NCBI GenBank assembly: GCA_907165135.1
Contig: OU015569.1
Span: 3,162,001-3,226,000, forward strand
Length of the DNA: 64,000 nt
DNA from: Oikopleura dioica
Taxonomy: Eukaryota; Animalia; Chordata
Direction of reading: 5' to 3'
Shown: positions 29-58,000 of the stretch, piece by piece
How positions within the stretch are numbered: position 1 is the stretch's first letter
Layout: every line of letters begins with the position of its first letter
Program-made: the position numbers and the translations under genes
The notes under the pieces: model-generated
The model's database searches: none
Told to the model about the DNA's origin: nothing
The model's input: the letters and a program-made list of their open reading frames with translations, nothing else

Positions 29-1445
29 ATGCATCCTGCTGAAATGTTCACTGAGGACGATTTCAATTTTTTGAAACGAGCCTTTGATGAGAATTCGTAT
101 CCTTCCAAGGAGGATATCGACAGTTTCAGTAAGAAACTTGGCAAAAGTCATACACATATCGGTCAATGGTTCGGTAACAGAAGATATAAGGAAGAAAAAA
201 AATTCAGCGATACCCAAAGAAAGCGACTGAACGAGGAGTTCCAAAGAAGTGACGGAAAGCCATCGATAGAGAGCACGTACAATCTTTCCATGGAACTAAA
301 TTTGACCTGTTTGCAGATCTCTGACTGGCTAGGGTCGGCAACCCAACAAAAAAACTCTTGTTGGGTAGTGGTTTTTGTTTTGTTGGGTTTTTGTTCGTTT
401 TTTTCTGTTGGGTTTTTGTTGGGTTAGGTTTTTGTTGGGTTACTTTTTGTTGGGTTTTGTTTGGTTTTTGTTTGGTAAATTTTTGATTTCGGCAAAATAT
501 GACATGTCTTGAGAACAAATGATCCCGGATAATGAATACTTTTTAAATTCTTTGTTATTTCCCCATAATGAACCAAAAAAATGACCATGCAACTCATCAA
601 AAACATAACAGAAAACACAACAATAACCCGAAAAAAAAACCAAACAAAAACCCTACAAGAAAATTTCTTGTTGGGTAGTGGTTTTTATTTTGTTTGGTTT
701 TTGTTGGGTCATTTTTGTTGGGTTTTGTTGGGTATTTTTTGTTGGGTTGCCGACCCTAGCTGACTGGTTCAAGAGGAAGAATCGATCGTTAGCATTCAGA
801 GCTGAGAAGATTGAGCAAAAAAAGCCGCTGTACATGGAGTACGAAAAAAGTGACGGGTATCCATCGAGAGAGAGCATCAACAGGCTCTGCGTGGAGTTAA
901 ACTTAACGTTTAACCAAGTCTACGAGTGGTTCAATACGAGGAGAAAAAATACCAGGAGGCAAGAGGCAATCAGAGCTGTCCAGTTGGAAAAGCCGAGCTC
1001 TCGCCAAAACGATGCGAATGGCAGTGAAAAAAACATTGGAGTAGTTATCAAATCATCGGAAAATGCTCTTTACGCTCAAGGGACGGCGGAAATTTCCTTA
1101 AGACTTCAGTAAATTAGAATCTAATAGCTTTTTACTCTATCAATAGTGATTTTCCATGAAAAGATAAAAATTCAAAAGCTGCAGAAGGAAATCAAAGCCT
1201 TAAACAAGCCGTCAGAGATAGTGAAGGTAAATTTAATAATTTGATAGCTGAAAAAAATGATTAATTAAGCAGGCCAAGAAGATAAAGACAACAACGACTA
1301 CGAAAGCGACGATTCGGACTACGAAATAATCCAGACACGCTTAACACAAGTGACCTTCCACCCCGACTATAAACAAGTTTACAAAACACCCGAAGGAGAA
1401 TTTTTGCATGTTAAAGAACGCGATCTCGTTTTCGAAGATAAATAA
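29..1445 (+). CDS. Divergent multi-homeobox protein (3 tandem homeodomains), interrupted by a MITE at 329-759; may begin upstream of the window
   Basis: Three helix-3 motifs: IGQWFGNRR, LQISDWFKRK (restored after removing the insertion and one TSD copy) and VYEWFNTRR, each preceded by a YPS/KPS loop. The 3' exons run to TAA at 1443-1445 via a probable GG-AG intron (1081-1163) and a GT-AG intron. Confidence 0.75.
329..759. mobile_element. Non-autonomous DNA transposon (MITE, hAT-like 8-bp TSD)
   Basis: Perfect 25-bp terminal inverted repeat CTAGGGTCGGCAACCCAACAAAAAA / TTTTTTGTTGGGTTGCCGACCCTAG. 8-bp direct repeat CTGACTGG at 321-328 and 760-767. Interior arrays of TTTTGTTGGG and an internal duplication (about 357-395 vs 667-705). 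Confidence 0.92.
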
Positions 1446-1459
1446 ACCTAACTATAAAT

Positions 1460-2962: not shown

Positions 2963-3116
2963 TCTGAAATCCGCAAGGTTGAAGCGTTTTGTGTAATCAT
3001 GAAGAGAGCAGCTTTTTTTAATATTAAGAGGATCAGGCTTTGCAAATCTTTGTAAATCAATGGCTTTTTTAAATAAATATTACGCTGAAGTAGATTCGAT
3101 TTGTGAAGTTGTGGAA

Positions 3117-4011: not shown

Positions 4012-4326
4012 CTGATAAAGGCAATTTATTCTCTTTACATTTTTACAGTAGAGGTGTGTTCAAGATTCAAATGGCAAGAAGTTCAATTATTTAGGTGTCA
4101 GACTAGAGAGCTAGAACTTGGAAAGAAAGAAAGCGAAGCACGTTTTTCATGCCTTTTTGTTTCCTTTCGGTATTAGGTAAGTCTAAAGGATCATGCGAGC
4201 AGCTGTGTTTTTGTTGAAGAAAATCAGTCGGTGAAGAAGTTTAACAGAATTCGGCTTGAAGAACAAAAAAATTGAAGAAAGTAATTAACAATGCTGTGGT
4301 CTAAAATTGAGTTGTTGAGGTAATCA

Positions 4327-7300: not shown

Positions 7301-10107
7301 CATTGTTGATTGCGAAAAAATGGCAGGAGTTGATTACCTGATACAAGTGACTTTTCCGATCGCTTTTCAAGGTTGTACCAGAGCTCATTATCTCCCGAGA
7401 GCGTGCGCACCTCAATGACAGTCTGTCCGAGAAAGTCATCACTTTCTCTGAACAATTTCGATTTGACCTTGGACTTGATGTCATTGTCCTCGTCCCAAAC
7501 GCGCACTTTAATTCGATCCGTGGAGTTGGAACAGTCAAAGTGGAACTGCTCGTTCCACACTGGATTCAAATTTTTGTGAATTGTCTTTGTTCGTTTTTGG
7601 TTCCTGTTTCCGATTTGAACGGAGACGTATGGATCAGAAGTTCCGGTCTTGTCCTTAGGCGCCAAGCCTTGAGCTTCGTGCACTTTAATCGAAAGCTATT
7701 TTTTGGATTTAAATTCAACAAATGTCTACTAGACAAGTTGGCTGAATCATCATCATTCTCGCGTACTAATAAAATATTAAAATCCATTCCTTTGCACGCC
7801 ACTGGCTTGTTCCATCCAAAATACTTTGCCGCGCCGCGTTCAGCGCTCGCCCATGATCCTCGTCATTGACTCCAAACACCTGCCGTAGGATGTCGAAAAC
7901 GGCAGGGGAGGATTCAACGCGGTTCTCCATCGACTTGTTCATCACGGAAATGATTCTTTGAGTCTGCTCTCCGAGGCTTTCTTTCTTCGAGCTTCGTTCT
8001 GCCGCACGCTGGAGGCAGTCGGCGTTGATCAGATCTTGGCATTTTTCGTGGCAGATCAGTCGGCATTCGCTGCAACGCATTCCCTGAAATAAAAGACAGT
8101 TTATTTTCAAGCGCTAGAATAATAAATCACCTGACGAGCGAGGCCCCAAAGTAGCCCCCTGCATTCCTCGCAGCACACAGGCCGAGGAGCAGTGTAAACT
8201 TCAAAATTATGCGGCGTCGTGTTTGAAATAGGATATATAAGTGCCTTTCCAAGCGTTCTTAAAAATATAAAGAAAAAAATCATTCATTAGCGAAATTGAA
8301 TAATTAATTAGCCCGTTAAAAGGGATGATTAACTAGTAGGTGCACCCAATAATATATTTCTTGGGTCGCATGGCCACAAGGTCCTTAAAAAAGAAGAAGA
8401 GTATTTCACTTTTTCACTTGCTGTGTTGAATAATATATTTGAACACTGTGCCTGTAGTGTTTTCTTATAAACATGCTGTTTCAATTCGTTGTCCTGGAAG
8501 CTGGCACGCGAGTTCAGTAAAGCAGTGGTGATTCCCGTCTTTTGACGATTCATTAGTTCGGCAGTGAGTTCTTGCATCAATGGAATGGAGTTTTTTCGCC
8601 GCACAAGGGTTGTAAAGAGACCAATTTCGGTAATAAGCACGGCGCGTTATTTTTATTTAATTTTGAAACGACACTTGAAAAATTGAAAACGCAGAAGAAA
8701 TTTGAATCAAGAACGTTTACAACCCCGAAAGCAATTTGAAATTGGGCATTGAGTCTATCGAGCTGAGGAAGTTGGAGGCGATGGCTTGGACGCCCCAGCC
8801 GGATTTGCGGATCTTGGGAATGTCGGCACCATTGCCTTCGTTGTCGCTCTCGCGGATCTTCACACGGATCTTGTTTACCGCTTGAATCCAGCGGAACTTG
8901 GCCACGGAAAAGTTTTGGTCGTCCAAGTCGATGCCAGTTATGCTGTCGCGCACAAAGGAGAGCTGAGTGGTGCGCCGCGTCGACCCGCTGTTATCCTCGG
9001 TTCTGTCGGGTCTTTCATCGGATCTAGCACGGTTTATGCTGTGCTCGTTGTTTCGTTCGTTCGTATGTTCTTTTGGCGTAAATGGCACTCGCGAGGAGTC
9101 ATGAGAAGTCTTGATTTCTTCGTTTATTATCTGAGAAGGCAATTTGTGATATTCCTCCAAAGGCGATGCCGGGACGTCCTCCCCAATCAGAGAAGGCTTG
9201 ACAAAACTATTGTCGGTTTCCGATTTCGGATTCGAGAACTGGCGTTTCGGGCTCTTCCTGTTCGAGCAGAGCGCTTGCTCGCTCAGGCGTGATTCAGTTT
9301 CGCTTCCAAAGTTCTCCACGTGTTGATCGCACTCGGCTTTTTCTTCGATGCTTGTTTGGCAAAACTGCTCCTCGTCAGAGTAGAGCTTGTCTTCTGCGAG
9401 CTCATCTTCCTCGTGATAGCACTCGTGGTCCGAATTGTCGAACTCGATCCCGTCGAAGCCGTCAAAGCGCCAGTCGGATTCGAATGACGTCTGGAGAAGG
9501 AGGATTTCTTCCAGCGTCAAATCGGAGCCAGACTCGAACCTAAATAGTTGAAAATCACGCTATTCTCATTAATTGTAATTGATTTGCAATTGATGTGAAT
9601 TATTCAAGGAATAGATAAATAGATTCACCAAGATAACAAAATAAACCATTAATGCATTATTGAAACGTTCCAAGCCAGGATCGTTGATTTAACCCACCTT
9701 GACTCGACGAGCAGCTCATGGCAAGTTAACCGGTGCCCGCGAACTTTCGATGAGCCGACCGCCGTCGGGAGAAGTTCTTCGTACATCTGAAGCCACTTCG
9801 GCCCGCATTTCGGATCTGCGAGCGGCGTCTCTTCCGACGAAGCAGAAATCTCCTCGAAAGGAATACAAGCAGTGCCTAGGATCTTGTCCCAAAGAAAACC
9901 CTTCTCCCAGACTTCCAGTGTCACCATTTTGTCTCCGATCTTGTTGCTCGGGAGTTCAAAGCAAAACTCCTGTTCCCAGGCGGGCTGCTTTCCAGAGCGC
10001 TCGACCGACTGAGCTTTTAAATTATCGACTTTGATGGAGACATAGAAGTTGGAAGAAGTGTTGTCCGGCAGATCAAGGTTACCGCGGTGGATCTTCAAGC
10101 ACTTCAA
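4327..10107 (-). CDS. UNC13: Munc13/Unc-13 synaptic priming protein (C2A, CaM-binding site, C1, C2B, MUN, C2C); first exon not resolved
   Basis: C2A ([20 protein letters not shown]); CaM site [12 protein letters not shown]; KKTLQALIYP; C1 (HNFEV...[15 protein letters not shown]); C2B ([10 protein letters not shown]); MUN ([28 protein letters not shown]); C-terminal ILRILSQR. Confidence 0.95.
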
Positions 10108-17998: not shown

Positions 17999-20516
17999 TT
18001 ATCTGACTTTTTTGGGTCTTCCAATTTTTGAAGATTTTTTTCTTTTCGTTGATTTTTTCTTGGTTAGGTCGATTTCAGTACAGTCTTTTACTGGCAAGGC
18101 CGGATTGTCTTCTGGGTCTTCTATGTCGGGAGCTACTGGAATATAAATGCAACCGTCGTCTAATAACAACAGTTAGGAATAGTAACTAAAAGTGAATTAC
18201 CGAAATCTTCTTCGTCGCTGGAGAAAAAGGCTTCGATCTTTTCGACTTTTTCAACGTCGATTTCGATGTCTTGATAAAGCACATCTTCATCTGGAGGAAG
18301 AGATTTATCCTCGTCTTCTTCGTCGAATTCGGATTCTCTGAATTGATTTTAGAAATGAGAAAGGTAGAAGGAGGTTACTTTTCAACGTATTCGACGTTTT
18401 CATCGAGCTCTGTGAATTCAGGAGCAAAGGCGGACCAGTTTTCGACTTGATTTCTCGACCACACGGTCATCATACAATTCGAAACTGAAACAACGATGGG
18501 CCGCACCGGATGCCAGACAAGATCTAGCAATTGCTCTCCTCGAGTTCCCTGAAAGTTGGTAAAAGGATTTAGTAAAACCGGCGCCTGTGTTACATAATTG
18601 GCAGCGTCTATTTACCTCGAGAATTTTGACTAAATTCGTGTTTCCCGATTTGATCTCGCGTTCTTTTTCCCAAATGTAAATCTGGTGTTGCTTCGCGCTT
18701 CCCGCGCACACAAACATTCCATCGCCCGAGAAAACGCATGTCTTCCACAGCGTTCTGTTCACGAGATCCTGTAGCCGTTGAATAGGCTCAATCGTTGATA
18801 CGCAAGGTGGTTTCCCCTCGGGGATCGAGTAGTCGCTAATTATTTTCGAGCTTCAAAGATGCATGTTATCGCTACTAAAGGGCGGCAATTATAGATTTAC
18901 CTGTCATAAACACGAATAACTCGATCGACGGAGTTCACCAGAAAATGCGCGCCTTTTCATTGGGTCTTTAATCTTTCTTAAATCCACCTTTTCGCGTCTT
19001 AATTACAAGAGTAATTAGCTACTCGTTTTTATTAATAATTCGACCCTTACTTTCCGCGCGAATTTGATGTCCTTGACACCTTGGGACGTGTTGCCGACTT
19101 TGAACGCTTTGAGCAGCTTGTACTTCTTCGCGCAAATGATGAAGACTTTGCCCTTCGAGTTGCCAGCGTAAATGCATCTTCCGCGACGATCAAAGGCTGC
19201 GCAAACGCTCATGTCTCCATCCTCGACGCAGGGAAGAGAAATTCGCTCACCGCTTGTTTCTTTTTACGCGTTCGAAAATTGAAGACAACGAAGAATTATT
19301 TTCGGAAATTTTGAAGTCTCTTTCGATTTATTAGATTTACAAAAATTATAAAATCATGGCAATGCAAATAATTGCTATCAAAGAAATGACAAAGCAGATG
19401 CAGGGAAGCATGATGCGCGTGAATAACGAAGAGTTAAAGCTGTCTGCTAGACGCCAGTCACAAATGATCCAAAAGGAGCTTCGAAAAAGAGGATCACTAG
19501 GCAAAAATTGGAACCCAGAATACCTGAATAAGACGACAAAAAGGAAGAGAAGGGAAAATGTAAATATTTTCGTCCAGATTGTGTATTTTTTGCTAAAAGT
19601 AAGATAAAAAATATGGGCGAGTAGTAGGAGGGCCATATTTACCGATGTGTTACAAAATCATCGTCTGAAATTGGTGAAAGCAAGCTCCGCTTTTTCTGGC
19701 TCATTATTACACTGTTCCTACAATCAGGCGGCTTCGAATCTGAGTTCGTTGAAGAATTCTTGAAAGAAGAATCATTCAAGATTTTGTCATGATTCCCGAT
19801 CGAGTTGGAACTGGCCCCTTCGCAGTTCTCTGTCAATGAGGGAATCATTCTGTCAAACACCTCTACTGTAGTGATATTTTATTCCTATCGAGATCGGCTA
19901 TTGCTTTTCTATCGAAAACGAAGAAAAAAATCGGATCGATATTCATTAAGAAGGCAAAGAAACGACGCACGTCCTAGGGGAATATCTCCCCGATATGAGT
20001 AGATTGAGCGTAGTTTTTTTATTATGAAATTATTGGTTTCTTTCCCGGTTGGAATATTTCTTTAAAGGTTTTCTTATTTAAAATGTGGCTTTTGGAACGC
20101 GTGGCTAGAATAATCGGAGGTAATTTCATCGGGCAAACGAGTAGTTGCTTGTCATTTCGTGGGTTGAAACAAGCGGATTGAACGGGCCCAGGAAATCGAA
20201 AACTGTACTCGGCCTCGTTGGTGAGCACATTCCAAATAGCGACGGTGTGATCTGTTCCCGCCGTGACAAGCTTGTTCCCTTTGCGATTCCAGCCCACTGA
20301 ACAAATGGAAGAAGTGTGCGCGAGAATAACTTTCGCCGTCCGTCTCGTCAGAAAGTCCCAAATGACAATTCGCCCATCGTTGCAGCCCGTGGCGAGAAGA
20401 CTTCCTCGACGATTGAAGCTCGCGGCGAGAGTGTTGTTCGTCGAGTCTAAGACTCCGTCGAACTCTTCTGGATAAGTGTAGTTTTGCCCATACGCTTCCA
20501 ATAGCTCCAAGTTCAT
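17999..20516 (-). CDS. RBBP5: COMPASS/MLL subunit RBBP5 (WD40)
   Basis: MNLELLEAYGQNY...PEEFDG, GCNDGRIVIWDFLTR, AFDRRG, LQDLVNRT.WK, WHPVRPI, ENWSAFAPEFTELDENVEY. Confidence 0.95.
19346..19848 (-). CDS. Nested orphan gene in RBBP5 intron 1: about 150 aa, Ser-rich N-terminus, two hydrophobic segments
   Basis: ATG 19848; GT-AG intron 19642-19593 joins the 73-aa and 96-aa ORFs in frame (THR|KKYTIW); stop at 19346; AATAAA at about 19332-19327. Confidence 0.6.
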
Positions 20517-20679: not shown

Positions 20680-21868
20680 TTAGATAAAATCGCCGCCGAA
20701 AGGGTCGCCAAATCGTCCCCGTCCACCTCTTCTCGGGCCTCCTCTGGGGAAGTGATTTCCTGGGAAATCTGGAGCGTCAGGATCTCGACGGCCAAACATA
20801 TCCGGATCTTGAAAGGCTCCTGGTGCAAAAGGGGGGTCCCCGCGAATCGGGCCGATTCCGCCCGGCATCGGCATTCCTGGTCGCAAATCGTAGTCGCCTC
20901 CGATCATTCCTGGAACTCCTGGGAATCGAGGCGCGGGGAACAATGGATCGGGGAAAATCGGCCGAGGAGGAACTTGGATATTCGGCTCCGATTGAGTTCC
21001 ACGTGGTCTAGCTGCGGACTTGTCCCGTTGGTAAGATAGTCCGTACAATTTTCGCCATGATGCTTCGTCCAACCCAATTGTGGTGAAATTTTTAAAGTAG
21101 AGTCTTTTCCATAGACTTTCATCGCTTCCCACTTTTTGCAGTCGCTTGCACGTGGCACTGAGTCTCACAAGGCTTTTAGCATCGAGACGGGCACAGATAT
21201 CAAGGAGGATTTCGTCCGGAAGGGCGAGAAATCCTTTCGCTAGTCCACTCAACTCTTTGAACTTTAAAACAACTTTGGGGAGTATTTCTGTCAGCTTCTC
21301 CTTCTCGTCTTCAGAATTGGCGACAAACGATTCGGTGAAAACTGTAGCTTCGTATGTTCCGATTAAATTTACGACGTAAATTGTAGATGAAGGAATGTCG
21401 CTTTTGATGAAGTTCATTTTTGCTCCTGGAATCGGGCCATAACTGTACGTTTTTTGCCCGCTTGTGTCGACTGAATATTAATGTAGAAAATTGAATATAA
21501 AAGCATTTTGGTTACCATCTAGTCGAAACTTTAGTAGACTGAAAATATCGCCAAGAGGGGGAGGAGTGGAAATAGAAGCAACTAGATGAACTCGAATTCT
21601 GTCACCAGCGACGATTCCATGATCAGAAAAAGCTCCACTTAGAGGCAACATATCGGTCCCGTTTAGTGAAAGATCGAAATGATTCTCGGAAGCTGCTTCT
21701 CCAGAGATATCTTTTTCACGTAATAATCAAGATGCTCTTGGTTTAATGTTTGATTTAAATAATCCTTATTAACGTTCCTGCTGAAATTTTCGAGCGAAGA
21801 TCAGTTAGATCCGTTGCTTCCAAAGAAGTGTTTATATTTAGCAAGGGCTCTTTTATCCGAAGACGCAT
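20680..21868 (-). CDS. FBXO7: F-box only protein 7-like (UBL, short FP-like region, F-box, Pro-rich tail)
   Basis: MRLRIK...FDLSLNG...HGIVAGDRIRV (UBL); LALPDEILLDICARLD (F-box); PGMIGGDYDLRP tail typical of FBXO7/PI31. Confidence 0.85.
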
Positions 21869-25450: not shown

Positions 25451-26616
25451 ATGTCGTCGAGCCAGGTCAGGGCTCGATTTTGTGTGAAAATATATTAGTA
25501 AAAATATATTTTAGTATATTAACATTTGTTACTGAACTTGAAGCGAATTTTGATAATTTGAAAATATAAATATGAGCCTTCAAAGATTAATGGCAATACT
25601 CGACAGAAGATCCTTCGCCAGTTGAGGAACATCATCCCCCGCCCCATCACTATTTCCCCCGACGATCCCAACGCCCCACCCGAGCGCCGATTCCCCGTCC
25701 GGGTCTCCCCCCTGAACGTGCCCTTCGAGTACCCCGCTGAACCGATTTTCAAAGTACCCAAGGTTCCCAAATCCATGTTTTTCTACGACACTCCTAAGCC
25801 GAAGCCGGAACCAGAACCAATCGTTGGAATCTCTCAGCGTACCGTCTGGTGCCCGCTGAAGAGCAAGAATCAGCTGAAAGTAACTCCCATCTACGCTTGG
25901 GGATGGGACAGAACCTATGCCAGAAGTCGAGACCTCGAGAAAGCGGGAATTAAGTTTGTCCCACCATCAGGAAATAGGTGCGAAAGATACAGTAGTCTTA
26001 ATCTTGACCCAGAAATATTTGAAATAATTTCGCACCTCGAGAAAAAGAGCGAAGAAACAGAGTGGTTATTCCTTACTACCCACCGAACAGCGATTCTGCA
26101 ACTCCTCTGGCTCCTAAATCCAAGAATATTAAGATCCAAATCCAGCGGGACGAGCCAGAAGCTCAACTCCCTGACCAAGTCCCCACTCTCCAGCTTCCAA
26201 CACGGCAGCTTCCCTTGCCCGAGCAGGACCTCTTCGGGGTCAACTCCGAGGAAGTTCCTCAGCCTTTGTTTCCACCAAAAGAAGACGATGAAGAGGACGA
26301 AGACCCCTTTAACACTTCCTTTGTTGGAGAAGGTGACGATGATGATGAAGACGACGAGAACGGTGAATATCGCGGCCGAATCAATGAAGAAGTCGAAGAA
26401 AAAGCTGATGACTTCAAGGAAAACTGGGACCCCAATGCTCCCGGCCCATCTTCTCCTGGAACCGATCCAGGAACTCCACGACCAGGAGCGTCTACTAGGC
26501 GCCCGGCCTCTCGACAGATCTCCAAGGACGAATCTTCCCCGATGATGGATCTCTACGGACCAGAAATCGTCACTTCTATCTACAACGTCCGACGAGACGC
26601 CCTCAAGCGCCTCTAA
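25451..26616 (+). CDS. Orphan Pro-rich/acidic protein, divergent from MSH2
   Basis: MSSSQ|INGNTRQKILRQ... (intron 25466-25585). The frame switch near 25970-26050 is resolved by a GA-AG intron. Acidic C-terminal ORF ends ALKRL*. No family recognised. Confidence 0.65.
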
Positions 26617-35481: not shown

Positions 35482-36593
35482 ATGGCTGGAATCGCTGATG
35501 GATCAGATCAACTAGTGCCAGGGCGGGTTATTACATGTATAACACGAAACGATGAACAGTTCTCTGGTGCCGTAAGTGGAGACTTAGCCAGGGTTTGCAA
35601 TAGAGGCTCCTTTGGGGGGAGGTTAATTAGGGCCATTAAAACGATGGACTATCTAGCAAATCAGACGCTTGTTATATTTTTGTCAGCAAATCACAGCTAA
35701 AAAACCTCCATAAAAGCAACCCTCCCCCGATGGAGCTTTAGCCAACGCTAGCTTGTTAGACAGTTGGGTATTGTGTACCTGTTTAAATTTCCTTTAGATC
35801 ATTGCTGCTGATCCCTTTAGTTCTATTGTGATGATAAAGTGCAGCAACAGCAAAGTTGTGTTGGTGAACTTGCGACAAATCAAGTCTCTTCAAATCGAAG
35901 ACAAAACAGAGCCCATTCCAGAAATTCCAAAAAGTTCGTAAAAATTTGCTTCACCAAAAATAGCCCAAAGAATAACAACCAGAAAAACAAGTCAATATTG
36001 TCAAGAAAATCATGGCGGAAAGACTGGCAATTCTAAATATCTGTTTTTAAGAATTCGCCGTTGCCAAGTTGGAGCAGCGTCTTTTGGGCAATGTTAAAGA
36101 GAAAATGAACTTGGCGCAAGAAGATGGTCACGAGAAACACCCTCTTGGCGCTAAGATCATACAGGCAAGGGTTCTCTTTTAAATTTACTTTACAGTCAGG
36201 TTTTGATTCTGGTTCGCTCACAAATCATCGAAATACGGGGCATTTTCTCCATTTATCCGAAAAAATGATCATTTGTCAGCCCTGAGTACCTGACTTAAAA
36301 TGATATATAATGATGCACTGTGCATCAAGTAAAATTACTAAAACCTTGGGGTAGAAAATCAACCGTATTCTGGAATGTAAATGGGAAGGCAAGAATATCG
36401 GTAAGCGAAACGTCTTTTTGTCTGTTTATTTAAGCAAATTCTAGTTGTAATGACTGCTGGTATTGAAATTCGGCCACCGTTCAACGAGGCCAACGTGTTC
36501 ATACGCAAAGGAGGAAACAAACAGGGAAAGGAGCGTATTCAGAAGTTACTCTCCAAATTTCACGAAGAAGAGAAGTCGTCGTGTATGCACTAG
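35482..36593 (+). CDS. LSM12: LSM12 homolog
   Basis: Spliced product with Lsm-like N-terminus (GRVITCIT...GAIIAADP...VVLVNL) and AD domain (KINRILECKWEGKNIVVM...IRPPF); not visible as one ORF in the track. Confidence 0.8.
35588..35751. repeat. Degenerate inverted-repeat element in LSM12 intron 1
   Basis: GCTCCTTTGGGGGGAGGTT vs AACCCTCCCCCGATGGAGC; ends CCAGGGTTTGC / GCCAACGCTAG resemble the 329-759 MITE termini; no clear TSD. Confidence 0.45.
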
Positions 36594-40802: not shown

Positions 40803-43800
40803 TTAAGAGTCGAAGGACTGCCAGGACGGTTTCCGCTGGAGCAATCGCGGTTGAACTTCGTAATCGATCGACACATTCCCGTGCAGAGCATCAAAAATGG
40901 CAGTATCTTCTGGATTCTTTCGTACTCTAGATTTCGATGCCTTCGCAAGAAGCGTTATTTTTAGCTTGTTGCCTCCGTATTGAATTGTTTGGACGAGCTC
41001 GTCCATGTCCATAAAGTCGAGGGAAGATTCGTCCAGTTCGATGAGTCTGTCTCCGACGCTAACTCCCGCTTTTTATGGCTTCAGATTGTCGTTCTATCAC
41101 TATATTGATGCTTGATCAAATAAATATTGAAGCCGTTCCTTGATCAGCTGCACCGTTCGGTTGAACATACTCAACATAAAATCCTTTCGCATCTTTTGTC
41201 ACTTTGAATCCAAATGAGCCATTGTCTCCTCTTGTAAGAGTCACTGTCAGAGGTTGCGTCGCCGACGAGAACTCGTCGTTATTTGCAATTGAGAGTACTT
41301 GGAGCGTCACTTCTTCTGTGCATTTGCTTCGGACGTAATCGACCAGCTCTTCATGCGACCATTTGGAAGGGTTTTTGGCGTTTATTGAGCCCAGACGATC
41401 GCCGATCTTGAGCCCAGCGCGATCAGCTGGAGAGCCGATCGTGACATCTTCAAAGAAGTGTCCGTCCGCGTCGAACCAAAGATGGAATCCGAAACTCTGC
41501 TGGGCTCTCCTTGCAATTCGGATCGTCTTTGTCTGGAGCTGGTCAATAACCTCTTTGAACTCAAGAGTGAGAGTAATTTCTCCATTGGTGGTGCTCTCTA
41601 CGTACTGCACAACTTCTTCGACGCTCCAGGCGGTCACATCTGTCCCGTCGACCTTGAGAACCTTGTCTCCATCGCGCACGCCGAAGTATTCGGCTGCACC
41701 TCCTCGTTTCAGCCAGTGAATAATGTGCGACGAGTCAGACTCTTCGAAGCCGCTCGAACGAGCGAGCTTAAAACCAAAATCTTCATCCTCGAATTTGAAA
41801 ATGGTTATGTCAGTTCTCACGGTAACGCTTGTCTCAGTGACGTCTGAGTTTGAAACGAAATTGCCGCGCTGACGATTTCTTCGCCGACCGACTTTGGAAC
41901 TTTTGGACAACTCGGCGAGAATGGACGTAATTGGGATCTTTTCACGTTTGTAACGGTGGAAGGATTTGGTGTCGATCGACAAAGTGAGCAAAACGTTGTT
42001 AGAGGACTAAAAGATTGAAGTGAACATTAAAGATCTTTGAATGTAAATTACTTTTATTCGAACAGCGACATCTTCGGGAGAATCGTGCTCGATATTGATG
42101 TGGTTGAGCTCGATGATTCTATCTCCGACTCTCAGGCCCGACGATTCCGCGATGGATCCTAATTTCGCAGCTTATAAATTTCAACTCTCGGGTTATGAGT
42201 TATATGCTCGTTCTCGAAGTGTGAATATCCCACGGTGACTAACTTAACAAAAGTGGTTAAATTAAAGCTGTTCCTGAGTTCACTGTCGCGAAGTAATGTC
42301 CGTGCAGATCCGTTCCGACGGTGAAACCGAAAGACTCGTCTTTTTCTCGCTGAAGCCTGCAAAGCAGCGGTTTACCGGCAATGTTATTTTGATCGCTTTT
42401 CTGGTCCAACACAAGAATTTTGACATGATTTCCAGAGTTCTTAATTAGCTCCGCTACTGCCTCGTGGCCCATGGAATCGCATTTGATTCCGTTAATTTCA
42501 AGAACCCGATCGCCATCCTTCAATCCAGCTCTGCGAGCAGGACTATCTGCCTCGATTCGCTTTACTATCTGGGCTTCGCGATCCCGATCAATCGCTAGGA
42601 AGAAGCCAAAGCCTTCGCTGTCTAATTTCACCAAGTCGCACAGCCGCGGAACTCCGACATCCGCACTTTCATGCAACTTTGAAAAGCCTGAGATGGATTC
42701 TCCCTCTTCCGTCCCGACGAAATCATCTTTGTGCTCGTCCTTTGTAAAGAAGATGGGCTGTTCCGGAACTGGTCGTTCATCATTCTTAAGCTCGTCCATT
42801 CCGCTTGTCTTGAACTGCACAATATTTCTGTAATGCGTATCCGACTTTCCTCCAGCAACAAGCAAAGATACCTCCGAAGGCGCATTGCGTAGTTTTTGCA
42901 GAACTGCATCATGGTTAGCATTTTCCACGCTCATCCCGTTTAGTTGAATAATTCTGTCTCCAATTTTCAGGCCTGCCCGTTCGGCAGGACCTCCCGCATC
43001 GACTTCCTCAACGTAATGTCCGTCGCGATCTTGATCGTAGTAGATGCAAAATCCAAGCTGGCCATCTTCTTTATAGATTTTTGTAAGTCTTGGAAGGGCT
43101 CTTTTATACTGCATATCATACTCCTGCGCCACGACAATCAAGTGGCAAATGTTCTCGCCAGAGAGGATCAACTTTGTGATAGTAGTGTGAGATTCATACT
43201 CGCAGTTGATGCCGTTGATTTCGACGACACGGTCACCGAGTCTCAAGCCGCCTCTATCGGCCACGCCACCGACATCGACCCACTTGACAATTTGCCCTAC
43301 TCGCTCGTTATCAATAACAACGTAAAGTCCAAAATCTTCAGATGGTAGTTTCACCAGGCGACAGTAGCGAGGCTTAGCCACTCGAGATGATTTGGATTTC
43401 ATGTTTTTCGCCAAACTTCGCGTGACTTGGACTCCCTTCCGCCTGAAAAATGAGTCGCACTCGGGAGAGAGCACCAGAAGCTCGACTGTTTGTCTTGATG
43501 CACTTCCAACATCAAGTTTGGACACGCGCTTGCCGTCGATCTCAATCAAGCGATCGCTGTTTTGAAGTCCCGCTTTATACGCAGGTGATCCTTTTACAAC
43601 TTCCTCGACGTACTGCCCCGTTCCGTTTTGCAGCGACAAGACGCGGAAGCCAAATCCAAAATGTTCGTTCTTTGTGATTTTTATTATCCGCGGATGGTGT
43701 TGCAAGTCCAAAGTCACTCCAGCGATATTCTCTCTGTTTAGATCAATATTTTTGCTCGAGTAAGTTTCGTCAACTTCTTCGCTGATAAGGAGCAAAGTGA

Positions 43801-45345: not shown

Positions 45346-46383
45346 CATGGGCTCGAAGATAAACAAACTGAGCAAAACATACAAACGTATTATCTTAGTA
45401 CGCCTTTGACATTCGTTGATCCAAGTTGCTTCACATCAAATGGCTTAATAGCCCCGGTTTACAAGGGCTTCCCCATAAACTAAACAGTGCCCACGTGGCG
45501 CCCTCTGCTCCCCCTTTCAAGGGTTCTCGACGGGAAAGAGGAAAACTTCTCAGGTGTCGATGTGAACAAAACTAGGGCGAGAGCAATACTACAGACCTGC
45601 AAATCCGACTGTGAATTTTCGTCCCACGTGCGAGGAAGATCAGAAGACTGAAAAATAATAGAGATTTCTGAGAAGAAGGAGAAGATGTGGATAGAATGCC
45701 TATTCATCACAACAGGAGTCTTGGGCAAATTCTTCGGATCAGGTAAAATCTTACTTGAGGGATAGTCTTCGGAAAATATAATCAGGTGACCAACTACGCG
45801 ACTACGAGTCTGATGATGAAGATCTCGCAAAACTCAGGGAGGAACAAGTTTTTGCGTTATTCTACGAAGGAATGGATTTATTTCCCTTTATTTTTGTTTA
45901 TAAAATACGAAGAAGATTCTATTCTATCTTGATACACCTAGTCTCATAATGAAAACCATGGCAAGGGGAAGAAAAGGACGTCTCATCGCCGAACCCACTG
46001 AATAGCGCGCCTGCATTATCCACGACCACAAAACCTTCGATATTGTCGCAGGTAAAAAACAATTATCAAAGTGTCCATTGTGTCCATGACGCGTCGTCGA
46101 TCAAGAAAACGGAAAATGAATTTTTAGCCATTTCCCGGAAAGGAGCGAATTGCTCAGCCAGAACAGATGGATGATCTTTTGAAAAAGGGACGGGCGCTCT
46201 AAATTTAGAATAATAACTAAACGCTTCGTTATTTTTTCCCTTCGAGAGTCACCCTTTTTAAAGAGCTATTTATTGGCGGCGATTGTGGCGGGCATCATTG
46301 CTGGAGTTATTCTTTCCGTAGTCATCATTTCCCTAACAGGTTCTGAGCTCGTAAAAATGCAGGTGAATGAGCGGTATATTTAA
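45346..46383 (+). CDS. Possible small orphan gene with a C-terminal TM helix; exon structure unresolved
   Basis: Coding-like exons (DQLRDYESDDEDLAKLREEQ; PFPGKERIAQPEQMDDLLKK|SYLLAAIVAGIIAGVILSVVIISL) with GA/GG donors; not all joins are in frame. Confidence 0.35.
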
Positions 46384-46780
46384 GTTCACCGAGTGTACAA
46401 AAGCAATCAGGGAAGCTACGTCGTGCCGCTGCTGAAACCGTCGATAGCGGAGAGTGAATGAACGAACGAAACCACTTTTTGTGTTTGTACCATAAATTTG
46501 TATACACGAGTCTTTCTCACTTTGATCAATGCGACAGTGAGAGCCACTTCTACTTCCTGCGCCTGACGATCAAAAGAATAAAAGTCCTCTCCTCGATCGT
46601 TTCGTTGAATTTGGTGATCATTTGCGAAAAATATTATAAACGAAAGGCCAAAAAATGAAGCGGATTTAGATGAGATTAGTTATTTCCGAGTAATATCGCA
46701 CAGATGTGTCAAGGTCGAAAGAAAGATCGGCTTTGGCCGATTCTCAGACAATAGGCTTTCAGGAAACATAAGCATTTGAT

Positions 46781-49700
46781 TTAAAGAAATAGAAGCAATA
46801 AAAGGTAAAGAATAGAGCCGAGAGCAGCAATCGGAGATGAACTTGGTTCTTTAAAAGCCCATCCCAAGTCGCCTTCGAAATTCATTGTTGATCGCAAGGC
46901 AATGCGTTTTACACGCTCTGTTTCCCCGAGAAACTCCATTCCAGTCAATCTTTCAATCTCGAGCAGCCTATCCAATGCATAATATATATCAATAAGAATC
47001 TTGAAGTTTACCTGACTGAGTGCATTTCTAGTTTTTCTTGCCACCACTCGACGAATGGTATGTAGTAAACTAATCTGCAGTTGAAATTGCCCCAATAAAG
47101 CGGCCGTGTTTCTTCTTGATTGATGACCATGCACGGAGAATATTCACTGATATTGTTTCATCTTATTGATTCCGGAAATACAATTTGACATAAAATATAA
47201 GAAATTGTTCAAACTATCCTTGCGAAAGAGTCAGAAGTATTGTGCCTCCAAGGATACAGGGCAGGATAAAGTGAGCCCTCTTGATCTTCGAGGATAAAGT
47301 ACATGTGTGATGGTTGAAAAACACCCTGTCTATTTACCGGATCACCAAGAGGCTAAGATTTTCTGTAAGTTAAAGGGCTTTACAATGAAATATCCGGCTC
47401 CTATTGCACCATTTGTTCGTCTGCCTGTTCATCCATTCAGAAGGAGGAACATAAACACCAGTTCCTGTTGTATCGAATGCAGTTCCGAATCGAAGCGATT
47501 TAACGTCGTTGGAAAATACTCTTGGCAGCATGTCATCCTTTAGTGTGTGCCACCAGTAAGGTTCATCGAAGAACTCGAGTCGCGAGTTGTCTTCGAATCC
47601 GAGCCGTAATTTGTTCATACACTCGTCAAGTGAAGAACAACTGGAGTATGTGGGGAAGTTGTGATGCTCATCAAAAGCTATGTCGATCGATTCATCAACT
47701 TTTACTCCGTCGGGAAATTTAGTTTCTCCAATAAATGATTTTGATTTAGCGGGATTCGTGGGTCTTTTTAAAGCTGGCTCAAATCGTCCGTCAAGGGAAA
47801 ACTGCTGTGAATAGAATTTTTCCATCAACTTTGGAGAATCAGTTCTTATGCCAACAAGATCCATGAGAAGTCGGAAGACTTCTACGTTTTGAATTGGTGG
47901 AAGAACGACATTTCTTTTGATTTTAGGGCCGTACATTGTCAATGGGACTTTCATGCCTTCATATTTTGAATCCCAGCCGTGGTTGCCCATGTATCCTTCG
48001 TCGTTACAATTGTTCCAGGGATACGAAGTTACTTTCGTTGCAGGTTTCATGTAATAAAGCAAGAGCTCAATAGACGGAGTCGGGTTGTCATAATGCAAGC
48101 GTTTCGGTGCCAAGTATTTGTCATAAATTTTAAAACCGTTCTCATTCCATGTGCACTTGACGCCATTTATAATCTCGACAACATCAAAAGGATCTGATGA
48201 ATTTGAGCCCATAAGACCACCCTGCTGTGCTGTAGTTGTTTTCGTTAGAAGATTTGTAGTCCTCATAATATTCGGGTTGACTTCATCTAAAAGGGGAGCT
48301 ACAGCAACCATGTCCTCGCATAAAGCCTGCTCCATTCCGTGATCGGTAGTCAATACTATGTTCACGCATTTGTCTAAGTTGTACATTTTCAATCCATCCA
48401 TGAGCTGCTGTAGTTGTATGTCAACTCTTTTTAGTGCTTTATCGAGCTCTCCGGACTCGTCGTATGGACCAAAAGCATGTCCAATATGATCTGGCTCGTC
48501 AAAGTACAATGTGAGAAATTTCGGCCGGAAACCTTCCTTTGGTCCTGACCCAGGATAGGGAGGGAGATTAAGCCATTCTAGCATCTGATAGATTCTGTAT
48601 CCAAAAGGCTCTTCTCCGTATGTTCCATAGTCCCAAAAGTAAGTTGGATTCTCGCCATTTATCGAGAGATCATTACCAGCCCAGAGACAAGACGCTGAAA
48701 TCATGTCGTGTCGCTCAACAGTATTCCAGAATGGATCTCCTGACCACCACCCTTCATCAGGAGAGGAAACATTGCAAGAGTAGTCGCCAGTGTTAGGCGA
48801 GAAGACGTTGCAGCTTGCATCTTTTTTCCAGTCGTACCATTTGTTTCCAACAATTCCGTGTTGGCTTGGATAGAGTCCAGTCATAAGTGTGTGGTGATTC
48901 GGGAAGGTTTTGCTCGGATACGAAGGCTCCATAAACTCAGGATAGGAACCACACTCTCGCAATTTCATGTAAGTTGGTAAAAATTCTTTCCGTTCCAGGT
49001 ATGATTTTCTAAAGCCATCAGTCGAAATTAGAAGCGTGGTGCCTTCGTAAGTTTGATCAGGGCATTCAAACTCCTCTTCCACAATGCACTCTGATTCTGG
49101 AAATGTTGTCTGTCCTTTGCACGAAGTCAAATAGTCGGTGCAGCAGTCCTTTCGCTCTAGGCACTTGTCATCGCACCAGCACTGGGTTGACTCGACCGTG
49201 TTTGTGTTTGAGTTGTTTGGCGCCTCACCACATCGATCCCACTCTGGGAGTGAGGGAAATCCAGCTCCCCACTAAATTTATTCTGATATGGCCTGCTTGA
49301 TTTAAAAATAAGTACTTTGCTATCTTTGTTTTTGCATAAAAAGATTGAAGCGTCGTTAGCGTACGCAGATCGTTTGCTTCGGGTCGTTGAGCGTTTTTTC
49401 TGAAATCACAATTTATCAATATAATTGTTAAGTAAGTACTCACTCTGAGATGGGTTATGAGATTTTCGAAGCTATCCGTCGCCTGGAACATATAGTTTTT
49501 GTCAAATCTTACGTCGTCAAGCTTTTTAAGAATGTCCGACAAAGAACTTTTCTCTTCTATGTCTTCAGCAACATTTAAATCAACCCCAAATGATTGCCCA
49601 TTATCAAGCTGGAACAAATATCTGATGGATGACACTCTACCATGTCTGTAGAAAGGGATGAAGGTAAATTTCGATTCAGGATATCGTTCAGCAAGATTTG

Positions 49701-50263: not shown

Positions 50264-52578
50264 CAGGTCTCTATCGTAAAATGGAAGCAGTGGACTCAAT
50301 TTGGAAGATTTTGAAAATCAAATTTACTTTGGGATAAGTCGGAGATACAAGAACCCGCATGAATATTTGATTTTTTATTTGCCAGAAACGATAATTTGCA
50401 TTTACTGCCGATTTTCTAAAATCGTAGATATATTTTAGGATAAGACATCTTTCGTACCCTTTTTGTAGTTAAATTAGTTTACAAGTAGCCATCTAAAATT
50501 ATTTTGAAAACCATCAAAGAACTTTTTCAGTCATCGAGATCCAAAAATAAATTGTCATAAATGAGGAGCAGCTATATTTTTTGTTATTTCTTTTGTCATT
50601 TAATTCTTGCTATTTTTAATTTTCCAAAAATAATATCAAATTGAGCAATTATCGTGAATTTAGGGGAACTCAAAATGATATATTGTTTTACTTGCACCTT
50701 TGTGAATTAACCAATAAACTCAAAATAAACTGAAACTTTTCTTAATTCTGTAAGTCATAATTGCCTTCTGCCTATTACTCATCCGCAAGTTTATCGTTAT
50801 GTTGATAAGCTTAATATATTTTCTGTCAACTTGTCGCCAATTTATTGACTTCTCTCTCTTCTGCGAGATTTGAGCATGCGTCTTTCACGCTATAAATTAT
50901 TCCAGTTAGCAATAAAAGAACACTTCAAAAAATTTAAAAGATTGTTGCATAAGACAAGTCTTTCAAATAACAACCGTTCCGGGACTTCTGTTTGTTTGGT
51001 GCCCAGACGAGAAGTAATTTATTCTTCAATTATCAGTATTAAATAGTCAGAAAGCTAAGGAATGGTAAGCTCAGAGTTGACAGTATATAAAGAAAGCAAC
51101 TCAAGAGTGTTTATAGCGCGTGCTTAAAAATAGCTCCATAGGGCAATCTTAGGTGTCTCCCCACGTGATCGTCGAATTCAAGCTATTTGTTACGAAACAC
51201 TGAATACGATGTACAATGAATAACAAACGATGAATGGTGGATTGCATGATGGATAGCTTGCTTTCGAAGAAGGAAGATTCTTGAGTCGGATGCTCTCGCA
51301 TGCTTGGGAAACCCATGCGGTGAGAGACGCGCCAATTCAACTTTGGACTTTTCGCCACTTTAGGGAGATCCAGTCAAACGCATCGTTGGACTCAAGGAAC
51401 AGTTTCCTTGACTCGCGCTATCTGCATAAAAAGACATTCTACGAGAATCATCGAATCGGAAGCAGAAAAGAAAGAGATCTAAAGGAAGATGGTTTCAGAA
51501 TACATTCGCGGTCAGTCCGACTTGCGTGCACTTTCGCTGCTCGAGGAACTAAAGGTTCGTTCAATTAGAATTGGAGACATGAAGGAGTATGGGGGCATTT
51601 TAGTATGTGTTGTTGCAGCAAGACATGCATATTGCCAAACAAGCGATTGAAATCGAAAGATTAAACAAGGAAAATGAAAAGCTTCGCGGAGGTAAGCATT
51701 AATCAATCTTTCCTTCGAATAAAAAAAACTCAAAAGATATAACACGACTAAAAGAAACTCCAAAGGATATTTTGTTCTGCGATGCAGACATGAACTCAGC
51801 ACCAAACTCCCCAAAAGCTGAGCGACGGGAAGAAGACATGAAGTTTAGGTCACCGTCTAATAGTGCCACTCGTTTCTTGTAACAGACCTTGACCGCGTTA
51901 AAGTCCGAAAAGAGCGAGGACGATTCCGAGAGTGATGAGCCAAAGGACAAGTATGAGATGTTCAGAATCTCATGAGTGATTGTACACGTAATGGGAGGCG
52001 AAAATATTTTTATATATTTTTCTGTCCCAATGATGTTCAATAAAAATAACAGTAGAACACACGTTGAACTCTTGTAAAGGAGCTGGTCCCAAAGATGATA
52101 TTTCGATTGAATAAAGAAAAAGGAAAGGGGCTCTTAATTTATATCTTACCAACATATTCGTCTCTCTGATGTCTTACTATAGCTCTATAATAGAGTCCGA
52201 GAAGGAGCAAGAAAACTTGGAGAAGCGTCGTGAAACGGAACAAGAATTGGCGGAAGTTATAAACCCAGCGCATATAAAAGAGGCTAAGGAGAATATCACG
52301 AAATCGATTAGCCAGGCGCTGAACAGAAATATGATTGCGCCTCACCAGGAAAATGATTAGAATTTTTTAATCGTCGAGCAAATAAATATTATTGCACAAA
52401 AACGCCTCTCACTGAGTCTCGATCATTTGTACATGAGAGTCTATAATTTATAGATGATTAAAATTAGAAATGATCAGGAGGCTAAATTCTAACCATTGTT
52501 AAGGAAGAGGTACCAAAATAACTACTAATGACAACTATTAGTGCCTATCTTTTTGTTCTTGCGCCATCATGTGTTTAG

Positions 52579-53600: not shown

Positions 53601-55069
53601 TTGTTGCTTCTCATCACTCCCTGTGCAATCTCGTACATTTTGTGGCAGTAACGTATACTTCAGTGTAAATTCATTCTGTACATAGCGCAATAAAAGCACA
53701 TCCGAAGGGACGCGCTGGAGTGATAAACGCTTCATAAAAGGCGTGTCGAGCAGAAAAAAAAGCAATCAAGGAAGAGTACCAGGGGTTCATTCGTTTACTA
53801 CTTCCAAGTGAGTCATTTCGCGGAAGTTCGTAGCTGGTAGGTCTTTTGGGGGCTTGGAGATGATTACTTCTGATGATCTTCGCGAGCGAGGCATTGAACC
53901 AACCAAGCTTCAATATTTAAATGCATCTTGTTATTACTAGGGATTTACCTCGGGAAAGCCAAAGAGGGCCGATGAGAGCGGAAACTACGCCCTTCACAAT
54001 CAGCCTTTACCTTTCCTCCAATGCAGAAAAATAACAAGAAGAATATTGTCGACAATATCTTAAGTTTAGTACAAGTAAATGTCAGCTATCCTAGCACTTA
54101 CGAACCCATATGAACACAGCGTAGCCAGTTGATCTACAAGGGAAGTATTACTCTCGTTATCTCTATGTTTCCTATTCTGATATGTACTCACATGTGAAAT
54201 ATCATAACTGGAGTTAGAGTTCTTTTACCGCGAATCGCATCTAAGACTCCCAACGGGGGTATATAATTGATTCTAAGGAGCACTGATTACTTTCTTAGAC
54301 TCATTAACGACACGATCTTGTATAGTCGCGGTGCAACAAAGTGAAAAACTCAGTATATTCAAAATCAATACGTTTGAAAAAAGTAATTGAGCTCATGCCT
54401 TGAAAGCTTATGCATTTTATTTTCTTCGGTGTACACTGTACATCCTGAATACTGTATCCTGTTTTGCTGCTGATGCACGTCAAGAAAATTAGAGGCATGA
54501 TGGAACAAGTTAGTTGCCAGTTCCGTCAAGTTCTAATATTATTAGAAGGGAGATATGGTCTCATGAATTTATTATAAAAAGTTTGAAGACTTTTTGTTGT
54601 CGATAAGGGTGGATATTTGAATATTGGGTTGGTGAAACGGAGTGAAAAGAGCAGTTTTTGACATGAGAAGCCTAATATGCATGCAATTATGAAATTTGCA
54701 TGTATATATTGGTTTTAATTTAATACAGACACGTATACGGTATAAAATGGTTATGTATCGTATGTCTCGCCAAATCGGTGGGTTCACGGCCCGGCGCATG
54801 TACATGTTTGGCCAGACAGGCGAGAGGAGACTGTGCGAGGCAGTGTGAGAGGCTTAGGCGATAGGTTAAACCTGCAAGTTACTTGTTCTTGGAGGATGAA
54901 ACCAGTCATCTTTTTTCTGTGTCCGTAAATTTGGGGGAAAACGGGGAATATTACAATATAGTTAATAAATGAGGGCAAGAAGATTAAATATAATACATCT
55001 AACAGAGCTCGGCAGGACCCAGAAATTTGGGAGAATAAGGCGCCTCGCGAGTCAACAACTGGCAACTGA

Positions 55070-58000
55070 TCAGCCATCCATGTTGTCCTCGCGCTCGTGG
55101 GGGTTGAGCACGCCGGGGACGTTCATCTGACGCTTGCGCTTCTCTTCGGCCGCCTGTCGGATCTCCTCTTCTTTCTGGTCGAGGAAAAGGTCGAAGGTGT
55201 TCTCGCCGGCGAACTCGCGAATTTGAATCAGGAAGTCTCGGATGTGCTCGCGGAACAGCGCCAGATCCGAGTTCATCGCGAAGAGGCCTTCCACGAAGAC
55301 CTTGATTTGAGAACTGAAAAATGTCAATTAAAATCTTGGCCATCGAATTTTTTTTCTTACATTTGGAGTGTTTTGAAGTGCTCTTGAAGCAGCTCTGCGA
55401 TGTAGTTCTGGACGAATTCGACGTTCTTTTGCACGATTTCCGCCTTGTTGTTTCGAATCCATTCGGCGTCATTTTCTCGTGTTTCGTTGGGGTAGAGAGG
55501 CACGAACACATGACCGTTCTCAACCGACAACAGAATGTGGCACAAGATCTGGCAGTGCATCGGCAAGCCAGCAATGTGGGTAGTGTCAGTAACCACGCCA
55601 AACACCTAGACAAAACAAAATGTGAAATAGAGTCGATAGCACACCATTTACCTGGCTGATAACTTCCATAAGATAAGTTTTGTAAAACTCCTGTCCTTGG
55701 GCGCCTCTGGACTGGACGTTTTTCAAAAGCTGCAGCATAATATCCAGGCCTGTGTCATTGACGTTTCTCATTGTGTGTTTGAAAGCCCAGACGATTGAGT
55801 CGAGAATGAGCTAAAAATTAAGGTTGAAAGTTAGTAAAAGAGTAAATCCATCTCACCTTGAACATTTGAGGCGGGATTTCGAGGAAAGCGCCGAAGCATC
55901 CCTTGTTTATAGCTTGAATGAGCAAGAAGAAGTTCGTCCTGTGCTCTGGGAACTCTTCGAAGTTCTTATTAATCATCTCGAGCGTGCACTCGAACACGGC
56001 GTCGAGGATCTTTGGAATCTGTGGTGTGATCATTCCCTCCAGACGATTGACGATTGTGGCCATTGTCGAGAGAACTTCAGGTTCTCGAGCTGCCGGGACA
56101 TTCGATCGGTAATCTAATATAAAAGGTTAAGAACGAAGTTTTCTCGTTTTTGTTTCTTACCAAGGAGAACAGCGTCGAGAAGAGGTTCGACAAAGTTATC
56201 AGAAACAAGTCTGGTATCGGTTGTCTTCGATACCCAAAGAGAAATCAGAGTTAGCGTCTCTTTTTACAGTCTTCATCTCTCGGATAATAGGCTGCTTGGT
56301 GACCTGCTCGCCGCCTCGAAGAATCGCGGAGGAAATTGATTCTGAGAGTACTTTATAGACATTCAGAATGTCGAGGAAGATTCGGGCAAGTTGGATAATG
56401 TATTGATGCCCGAGGGACTTGCAGGCGCGGACGTTAGTTCTCAGAATATTGACGATTTCCTTGACGACTTCAAATTCTCGGAGAGACGCAACATCCTTGG
56501 TAGCAGCTAAATGAAATAAGTTAAAGAAAGCAGCTTGAAAAGGGAGAAACCTTGGATGTATCTGTCAAAGGACTCGTTCGGCAGCAACATGTACTGTTCA
56601 ATAAGTCGCTCTTGAGTAACCGCGTCCTGCTGTGAGCTGATCATGATTCCAACGGCTTCGTAAAAGGTATGAATCTGCTGGGGCTGCAAGTCGCAGATAA
56701 TGGAATTGACACCGTTGAGGATTTCCTCGATGAAAGGCATCACCTCGCCCATCTAAAGAGAAGAAGGTAATTGGATGAAAGGGATGCAAATATACCTGGA
56801 TGTGGACAAAGTATCGTTTGCACTTTTGCGAGATCTTGATGAAGGTATCGCAAGCCATGTCCTGGACACCATCGTGCGTTTCGTGCATAAACTCAAAGAG
56901 CTTGTTTACGACGGTTTTCAGGAACTTCCAGTGCGCGCGGAGGAAGCGAGGATACTGGCCAACAACGTACATGATATTCGAGGCAATAATCGCCTTGTTG
57001 TCTTTGCCTCGTTTTTGTTCGCAAAGACCGAGCAAGTCCTTTAGGGTTTTTAAATAAATTGTGGAAGCGATCAATAAATACCTTGATGACTTGAACGAGG
57101 AACTTTTTCTCGGCATCTTCGGTCATTGCGCCTGAAATCGAACCGATGGCCCAGCAGAGCGTGTTGAGATTCTTTCTCGACCACTCGGATTGATCGACCT
57201 GTCGGGCCAGCTTCGAGGTCATGATTGCTTCGGTGTCCTTGTGATCCAAATGCGTCAAGTACACGAGCGTCTCACGCATTGTTTTGTACAGGTTGATGCT
57301 GTCGGTGTCCTTTAACTGTTCGCGAACAACTTCTCCGTTTTCATTTTCGACGACGAGGACTTCTTCCGGCTTCGCCATTCGGGAGATCATGATTTTGCGC
57401 ACTTCTGTGAGCACCGGAAGGTAGAATTGGCGCCGTGGCGGGACATCCTAGACGAACAGATAAAATGCTTGAATGAAAGAATGGGGAATAGGTAGTAGAA
57501 GCGGTAAGATTGTTGGTGGGAAAAGTTGTTATGAGAAAAATGGAAAATGAAGAACTGTTTTTGAATAACGCAAAAAAACACGATGTTAATTGAAATTTAA
57601 AAAGCGCGTGTTTTGTTACCGAGAGCAGCGTGCTACAGAAGTCGCCTCTGATTCCATCACACCAAATATTATCATTAGGGATCTACAGACACATGACGAT
57701 TTAGAATAACAGGAGCTTTTTTCTGGACCTGATTTTTCTACTTACGGGAGTGTTGTTGAAGCCGAGAAGGCCTTGATGGTAGATTTGCTGATTCGAGGGC
57801 GCTTCTTTGTAGAGATCGCCGCTGAGTGAGTGCCAGAACTCGAGGCAGACTTTGAAGACTTCGGTTTCTTCGACTTCGGAGATCTTGACGAGGTAGCGGA
57901 TGCCGTCTAGGAGCTCGGCCTTGCAGCTACGTTCCGCCAGCTCGGCGTAGTTCTTCAAATACGTCTCCAGGAAGAGCGCCAGGTTCTGGATGAACGCTTG

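Follow-up and report, generated by a model that had tools for sequence, protein, structure and literature searches.

A class of introns with weak non-GT donors and complementary ends in Oikopleura dioica

Introns of the window and their ends

The stretch of DNA analyzed here (the window; 64,000 nucleotides, contig OU015569.1, positions 3,162,001 through 3,226,000 of the forward strand) comes from the Okinawa lineage assembly of the larvacean Oikopleura dioica (GCA_907165135.1), and its genes include a set of introns whose two ends are complementary to each other just inside the splice sites. One protein encoded in the window is identical to that of a gene in the X-specific region of OKI2018_I69. 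The published share of non-canonical introns in O. dioica is 11 to 12%, the Okinawa assembly paper giving 11% (PMC8008620); GA-AG introns flanked by AG upstream and by A downstream have been described, their mechanism being left open (PMC7072748). A preliminary description, made from the letters of the window, had listed 13 introns of unrelated genes with complementary arms. All 13 arm pairs are present, with 5′-end/3′-end duplexes of −6.3 to −15.6 kcal/mol, and the two introns given as counter-examples, in INTS11 (28548-28678) and IPO7 (31872-31940), have no stem in that register. The arms were said not to form one repeat family, and the introns indeed share no resemblance in BLAST comparisons among themselves.

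For most of the listed introns the junctions are supported by transcripts, homologous proteins or a second assembly (window coordinates, strand in parentheses). Joined frames were aligned with homologous proteins, the protein searches being run exon by exon. In UNC13, a GA-AG intron of 94 nt with a stem from +4 (7696..7789, −; posterior 1.0) and a GC-AG intron of 207 nt with a terminal stem and a purine-rich acceptor (8245..8451, −) both leave open-frame alignments to homologues, ungapped in the latter case (homologue P0115); a third, GT-AG intron of 158 nt has the weak donor GTGGGT and a moderate stem of −7.4 kcal/mol, as judged from the gene model and duplex energy (9540..9697, −). Protein alignments also support a 72-nt ENPP GA-AG intron with a weak stem (47147..47218, −) and two GA-AG introns of a PDZ gene: one of 70 nt with a 7-bp stem at +5..+11, seen in the second assembly as well (41069..41138, −), and one of 115 nt with a conserved 6-bp stem at +4..+9 (42159..42273, −). 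The GA-AG introns of an FBXO7-like gene (67 nt, with a stem that starts at +3 and a 3′ arm that is conserved between lineages; 21711..21777, −) and of MSH2 (63 nt; 22939..23001, −) are excised at precisely these sites in a spliced transcript contig of another lineage. Alignment to the syntenic scaffold of a second O. dioica assembly places a CRTAP-like GC-AG intron of 206 nt with a stem at +6..+15 (27791..27996, +), whose orthologue is 108 nt long with a shifted stem, and an orphan-gene GT intron with a weak donor and a strong stem of −14.5 kcal/mol (25466..25585, +).

The remaining three are placed by reading frame or spacing. The homeobox-gene GG-AG intron (83 nt, 5-bp stem, −5.9 kcal/mol; 1081..1163, +) is in frame with a putative acceptor, and a tandem paralogue bears a stem. 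An LSM12-like GT-AG intron of 226 nt with a long imperfect stem of −8.9 kcal/mol, an exception among GT introns, leaves an open frame whose length we take to match the human protein (35572..35797, +). The 298-nt GT-AG intron of XPO1 (57448..57745, −) is consistent with human exportin-1 spacing and probably real; its end pairing of −4.9 kcal/mol is unremarkable and no evidence for the class described below. Within it, the gene model puts a 63-nt in-frame exon (57620-57682, −) for which human exportin-1 has no room, and which is either an error or an optional exon.

Pairing of intron ends by donor type

Introns were collected from 255 kb of contiguous sequence of one contig, including the window, with a self-trained gene finder that uses position profiles only and is therefore blind to pairing between intron ends. 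The model has two intron classes and accepts a non-GT donor only after an exonic AG, in line with the literature (PMC7072748); a one-class model had been dropped because it merged neighboring genes, made up non-GT introns and diluted the signal. The 361 introns with posterior ≥0.9 were scored by the duplex of +3..+20 with −22..−3, the control being arms swapped within a class, which keeps composition; counts of stems use a threshold of −6 kcal/mol.

The ends of non-GT introns pair at −8.0 kcal/mol, compared with −4.4 kcal/mol for swapped arms (n = 43, p = 1.7e-9); the excess holds outside the window (n = 32, p = 2.5e-7), and GA and GC introns are each significant taken separately. GT introns show no excess over swapped arms, whether ≤52 nt (n = 244) or >60 nt (n = 66, p = 0.34), and splitting the long ones by donor strength or by acceptor pyrimidines reveals none either. 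On these predicted introns, the comparison with shuffled arms proposed in the preliminary description came out as foreseen for the non-GT class and not for long GT introns. Its statement that most introns longer than about 60 nt have a stem is not confirmed: among confidently predicted window introns of more than 60 nt, the −6 kcal/mol threshold is reached by 6 of 11 with a non-GT donor and by 1 of 19 with a GT donor, and in the full 255 kb the counts are 6/66 for GT and 28/40 for non-GT introns (Fisher p = 8e-11). The stem tracks donor type, not intron length; its first sighting among long introns reflects the minimum length of the non-GT class, 58 nt. The GT introns cited at the outset are a selected minority, three of which (in LSM12, UNC13 9697-9540 and the orphan gene) have real stems.

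The pairing sits in a defined place. It is best between +5..+10 and −14..−9, the positional peak that had been anticipated, with a register peak at +2..+5, and the 5′ arm pairs far worse with the adjoining stretch farther inside its own intron (p = 5e-5); the intron interior is at most weakly structured. Of the proposed fixed distance between the splice sites, a narrow register stands and strict fixity does not: the helix starts at +3 to +7 on the 5′ side, and its outer 3′ base lies mostly at −7 to −9. As proposed, it overlaps the U1/U6 positions +4..+6 and the pyrimidine/branch region.

The two-class model found the class unprompted, with the donor AG|GVAHGG, a purine-rich acceptor and no length peak at 40 to 50 nt. 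Its members have an exonic AG and a GA, GC or GG donor, in which position +3 is usually A and positions +5 and +6 are usually G, together with a helix of 5 to 12 bp that joins about +4..+12 with −16..−8 and differs in sequence between introns. Pyrimidines at −8..−3 number 2.6 against 4.5 in GT introns, RAG acceptors occur in 67% against 19%, and +6 is G in 58% of donors against 6 to 11%; the donors match U1 at 5.4 of 9 positions compared with 6.0 to 6.4. The earlier suggestion that terminal stems mark introns with weak donors and purine-rich acceptors is in this respect borne out. A branch-like A peak at −14/−13 is the same as in GT introns and falls inside the 3′ arm. The AG acceptor and exact removal from mRNA are upheld by transcript contigs and protein alignments; the GT or GC donor usual for U2-type introns is not kept across the class, in which GA, GG and, in one intron, probably CC take its place. 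Housekeeping genes commonly contain such introns, and splicing is clean in the available transcripts. U1 has a canonical 5′ end in four full genomic copies, with no variant among them. Elsewhere, a U1 snRNA copy is split by an insert, the same element sequence lying beside both halves (L005/L006, G000:C4:6603540-6604297).

Introns of the window that the preliminary description had not cited include an ENPP GA-AG intron known from orthologue comparison (71 nt, −12.1 kcal/mol; 47330..47400, −) and two predicted by the gene model: a GA-AG intron of 77 nt with a 10-bp stem of −15.9 kcal/mol (25971..26047, +) and a GC-AG intron of 190 nt with −5.8 kcal/mol (36165..36354, +). The model further predicts GA-AG introns of 96 nt with a weak stem of −4.8 kcal/mol (45870..45965, +) and of 71 nt with −7.6 kcal/mol (52123..52193, +), and a GG-AG intron of 76 nt with −11.1 kcal/mol (46188..46263, +).

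Stems in other lineages and the RBBP5 intron

Relatives of the window were taken from metagenomes, from a third assembly and from two older O. dioica assemblies, which we take to be those from Bergen; where they can be aligned with the window, identity is only about 70 to 77%. Non-GT introns predicted in the other O. dioica assemblies pair at −7.6 compared with −3.6 kcal/mol (p = 5e-4; n = 11, a set in which one donor is mis-called and some introns are orthologous to those of the window), whose long GT introns have no stem excess. In 9 of 10 hand-checked orthologue pairs the native arms out-pair cross-lineage chimeras (p = 0.01). The changes can be followed in single introns: the +7 pair of PDZ 41138-41069 is C-G in the window and T-A in the second assembly, a two-sided change; the MSH2 arms are largely replaced there, with a different 8-bp stem and pairing retained; and the arms of ENPP 47400-47330 are almost wholly different in the orthologue, which still pairs at −9.7 kcal/mol. 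Donors also switch at fixed sites, between GA and GC in ENPP 47218-47147 and between GT and GG in the orphan gene, where both sides have a stem and the GT donor is weak. The stem is specific to the class, located at the intron ends, variable in sequence and persistent across lineages. This pattern is what selection on pairing, rather than neutral decay, would predict, and selection probably keeps the pairing rather than the sequence.

Gene order (IPO7-INTS11-CRTAP-orphan-MSH2-FBXO7-RBBP5-RALGAPA-UNC13) is the same in the second assembly. One spliced transcript contig (L031) spans MSH2, the FBXO7-like gene and RBBP5, as an operon would give. Between INTS11 and IPO7 lies a local direct repeat of about 209 nt with 90% identity (30106-30710).

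The largest departure from the usual donors is found in an 845-nt intron (19260..20104, −) whose host gene we identified as RBBP5. A single RNA contig of depth 2, nearly identical to the window genome, omits exactly these bases (joint 19259/20105), and the junction is the same in transcript L031 of another lineage. The cut can slide by 2 nt; the CC-AG reading retains the exonic AG and an AG acceptor in all four genomic versions, whereas the slid readings require AA, CA or AC acceptors. Under the CC-AG reading the helix joins +3..+15 with −7..−19 at −13.8 kcal/mol, which is the register of the class, and the intron is probably an extreme member of it. A GT intron of RBBP5 present in three other versions (L028:11743-11820) is missing from the window at about 20153.

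Nested in the RBBP5 intron, on the same strand, is a small gene (19350-19705, −) of about 86 codons, hydrophobic, expressed and conserved in all lineages. Its second coding intron (19479..19523, −; joint present in reads) is a 45-nt GT intron without a stem in the window, where three other versions have a stem-bearing GA intron of about 59 nt. Another part of the RBBP5 intron, a non-coding stretch of about 60 nt (19924-19985), is strongly conserved between lineages and covered by RNA reads, and is possibly a leader of the nested gene. The raw RNA reads come from a diverged lineage and cover few junctions. In the second lineage, reads also splice the RBBP5 donor exon onto the nested gene's final exon (loose ends at 19484, runs X2 and X5), which would truncate RBBP5. 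In that lineage both acceptors are possible partners of the donor arm (−13.2 and −9.9 kcal/mol); in the window genome the arm pairs with the far acceptor only (−13.8 versus −3.2 kcal/mol). This one case hints that competing helices choose the acceptor.

Function of the stem and its relation to known systems

We favor the explanation that these introns are a second class among the U2-type introns of O. dioica, and that a selected terminal stem helps the U2 spliceosome to define them despite their weak donors; we consider this probable. The helix would form in nascent RNA and hold a weak donor beside its own acceptor, thereby replacing part of the role that U1 pairing and the pyrimidine tract play in GT introns. 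A helix lying over the U1/U6 site and the likely branch A at −14/−13 would have to be opened while the spliceosome assembles and U2 and U6 take over, either through strand exchange or through the action of a helicase; catalysis would be by the ordinary major spliceosome. The class contrast and the conservation make pre-pairing of weak donor and acceptor most likely, and the known geometry of the spliceosome makes later opening most likely. Methylation of U1 (m6A; PMC13326754) could act alongside the helix. That the arms pair as RNA we infer from the link of the pairing to splice-site register and donor type.

Several observations weigh against this explanation. Among the predicted non-GT introns, about 30% lack a stem that reaches −6 kcal/mol. 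For the most part the introns are model-predicted, within one 255-kb stretch of one contig, and the orthologue pairs are few and were selected by eye. Two scans without a gene model, in which chance pairs exceed the expected signal several-fold and which are too weak to decide either way, gave no clear excess: one counted 223 versus 194 for GA (p = 0.02, uncorrected), and the other showed nothing. The argument for RNA-level pairing from G-U pairs does not hold in this sample: at mismatch positions 14 are G-U and 12 A-C (p = 0.37). The advantage of sense-strand over antisense pairing is small (p = 0.036). Moreover, by covering the U1 site and the branch region, the helix might equally inhibit splicing.

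Among the other explanations, neutral repeat relics rank first, followed by a regulatory brake and then by artefact. The arms may be neutral relics of the terminal inverted repeats of DNA transposons (introners), the odd donors being handled by protein or small nuclear RNA (snRNA) changes such as U1 m6A; introner-derived introns of this kind have been described for Fritillaria borealis. In O. dioica, BLAST finds no multi-copy family among the stem introns in 255 kb, the three introns tested genome-wide (UNC13 8451-8245, CRTAP-like and PDZ 42273-42159) are all single copy, and identity between exon and intron ends beyond AG is at the null level, in a test blind to a 2-nt AG duplication. The stem introns are not a current transposon family. 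The arms also start inside the intron; between orthologues they differ in sequence and nonetheless pair, and the donor at a given site can switch. We regard the relic explanation as unlikely; an ancient transposon origin is possible and compatible with a present function. Between lineages, ten stem introns are shared and one, an orphan-gene GA-AG intron of the second assembly (L028:6219-6306, −), is absent from the matching site of the window at about 25854, a gain or a loss.

Somewhat less likely again is a stem that functions as a brake or selector, hiding weak donors and branch sites and so delaying or gating splicing through retention or acceptor choice. The helix does cover +4..+10 and the likely branch A, and the reads of the second lineage use the nearer of the two acceptors with which the RBBP5 donor arm pairs; the housekeeping genes and clean splicing of the class speak against a brake, which would also leave unexplained why stems go with the weakest donors. 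Very improbable is an artefact of selection and composition, in which G-rich donors and C-rich acceptors pair by chance and good cases were picked: the learned acceptor profile does have C at −10, the scans without a gene model are flat and the first GT examples were selected, but the within-class arm swap, which keeps composition, largely refutes it, and the stem excess recurs beyond the window and in further assemblies, with nothing in GT introns and a negative same-intron control.

There are experimental precedents for stems that pair intron ends (PMC12501133, PMC4691745). Nonconventional introns of Euglena pair from +4 to 5 to 6 nt before the exon, a spacing required for splicing (PMC12501133), and in euglenids (PMC12501133, PMC3935182), as here, a helix ties the two ends of the intron together, set in from each junction by a few bases; a terminal helix near +4/−6 is indeed found in the O. 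dioica class. Euglena has a conserved CDG/CHG core and no AG acceptors, whereas the O. dioica class has the donor profile GVAHGG, keeps the AG acceptor, +1 G, exonic AG and frequent +5 G, and has arms free in sequence and a looser register. In zebrafish (AC)m-(GT)n bridged introns, which are U2-type, end pairing enforces splice-site pairing and lowers U2AF2 dependence (PMC4691745). Those are GT-AG introns with long simple repeats; here the arms are 5 to 12 bp, unique and linked to non-GT donors, and complementary simple repeats at both ends were not found. The class appears to work like both systems and to belong to neither, because AG acceptors are kept and there is no fixed core and no repeats.

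The introns of F. borealis (10.1101/2025.08.15.670264; PMC13326754) are likewise those of a larvacean, with non-GT donors, complementary ends and a canonical U1 5′ end, in a species without a minor spliceosome; dependence of such introns on the U2 small nuclear ribonucleoprotein is reported for F. borealis only. Those introns end in the terminal repeats of transposons and have AC/AT acceptors, and U2AF is duplicated; in O. dioica, by contrast, the acceptor is AG, families and target-site duplications were looked for and not found, and the arms turn over with pairing kept. The GA-AG introns reported for O. dioica and Eurytemora affinis (PMC7072748, PMC8008620) are the same introns as those studied here, with an upstream AG, A at +3 and about 10 to 12% non-canonical introns; the accessible portions of these papers give dinucleotides and flanks and no terminal stem. 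Literature searches, beyond whose reach lay Denoeud 2010 and Henriet 2019, found no description of a terminal stem in O. dioica.

A bolder extension, which we hold to be rather doubtful, is a structure-reading route in an animal spliceosome, in which the exonic AG and the distance from the helix would set the cut, the donor dinucleotide would be nearly free (down to CC), and competing helices would choose acceptors, as in RBBP5.

The association of stem and donor is real, narrower than first stated, and probably under selection. How 11 to 12% non-canonical introns are spliced with a canonical U1 has been a question since publication of the O. dioica genome, and current work concerns U2AF and snRNA methylation; a cis-acting stem would be a concrete answer, testable in a cultured animal. 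If true, it would represent convergence with the splicing code of Euglena inside an animal U2 spliceosome. A stem rule would improve larvacean gene prediction, and would show how transposon-born or decayed splice sites get fixed.

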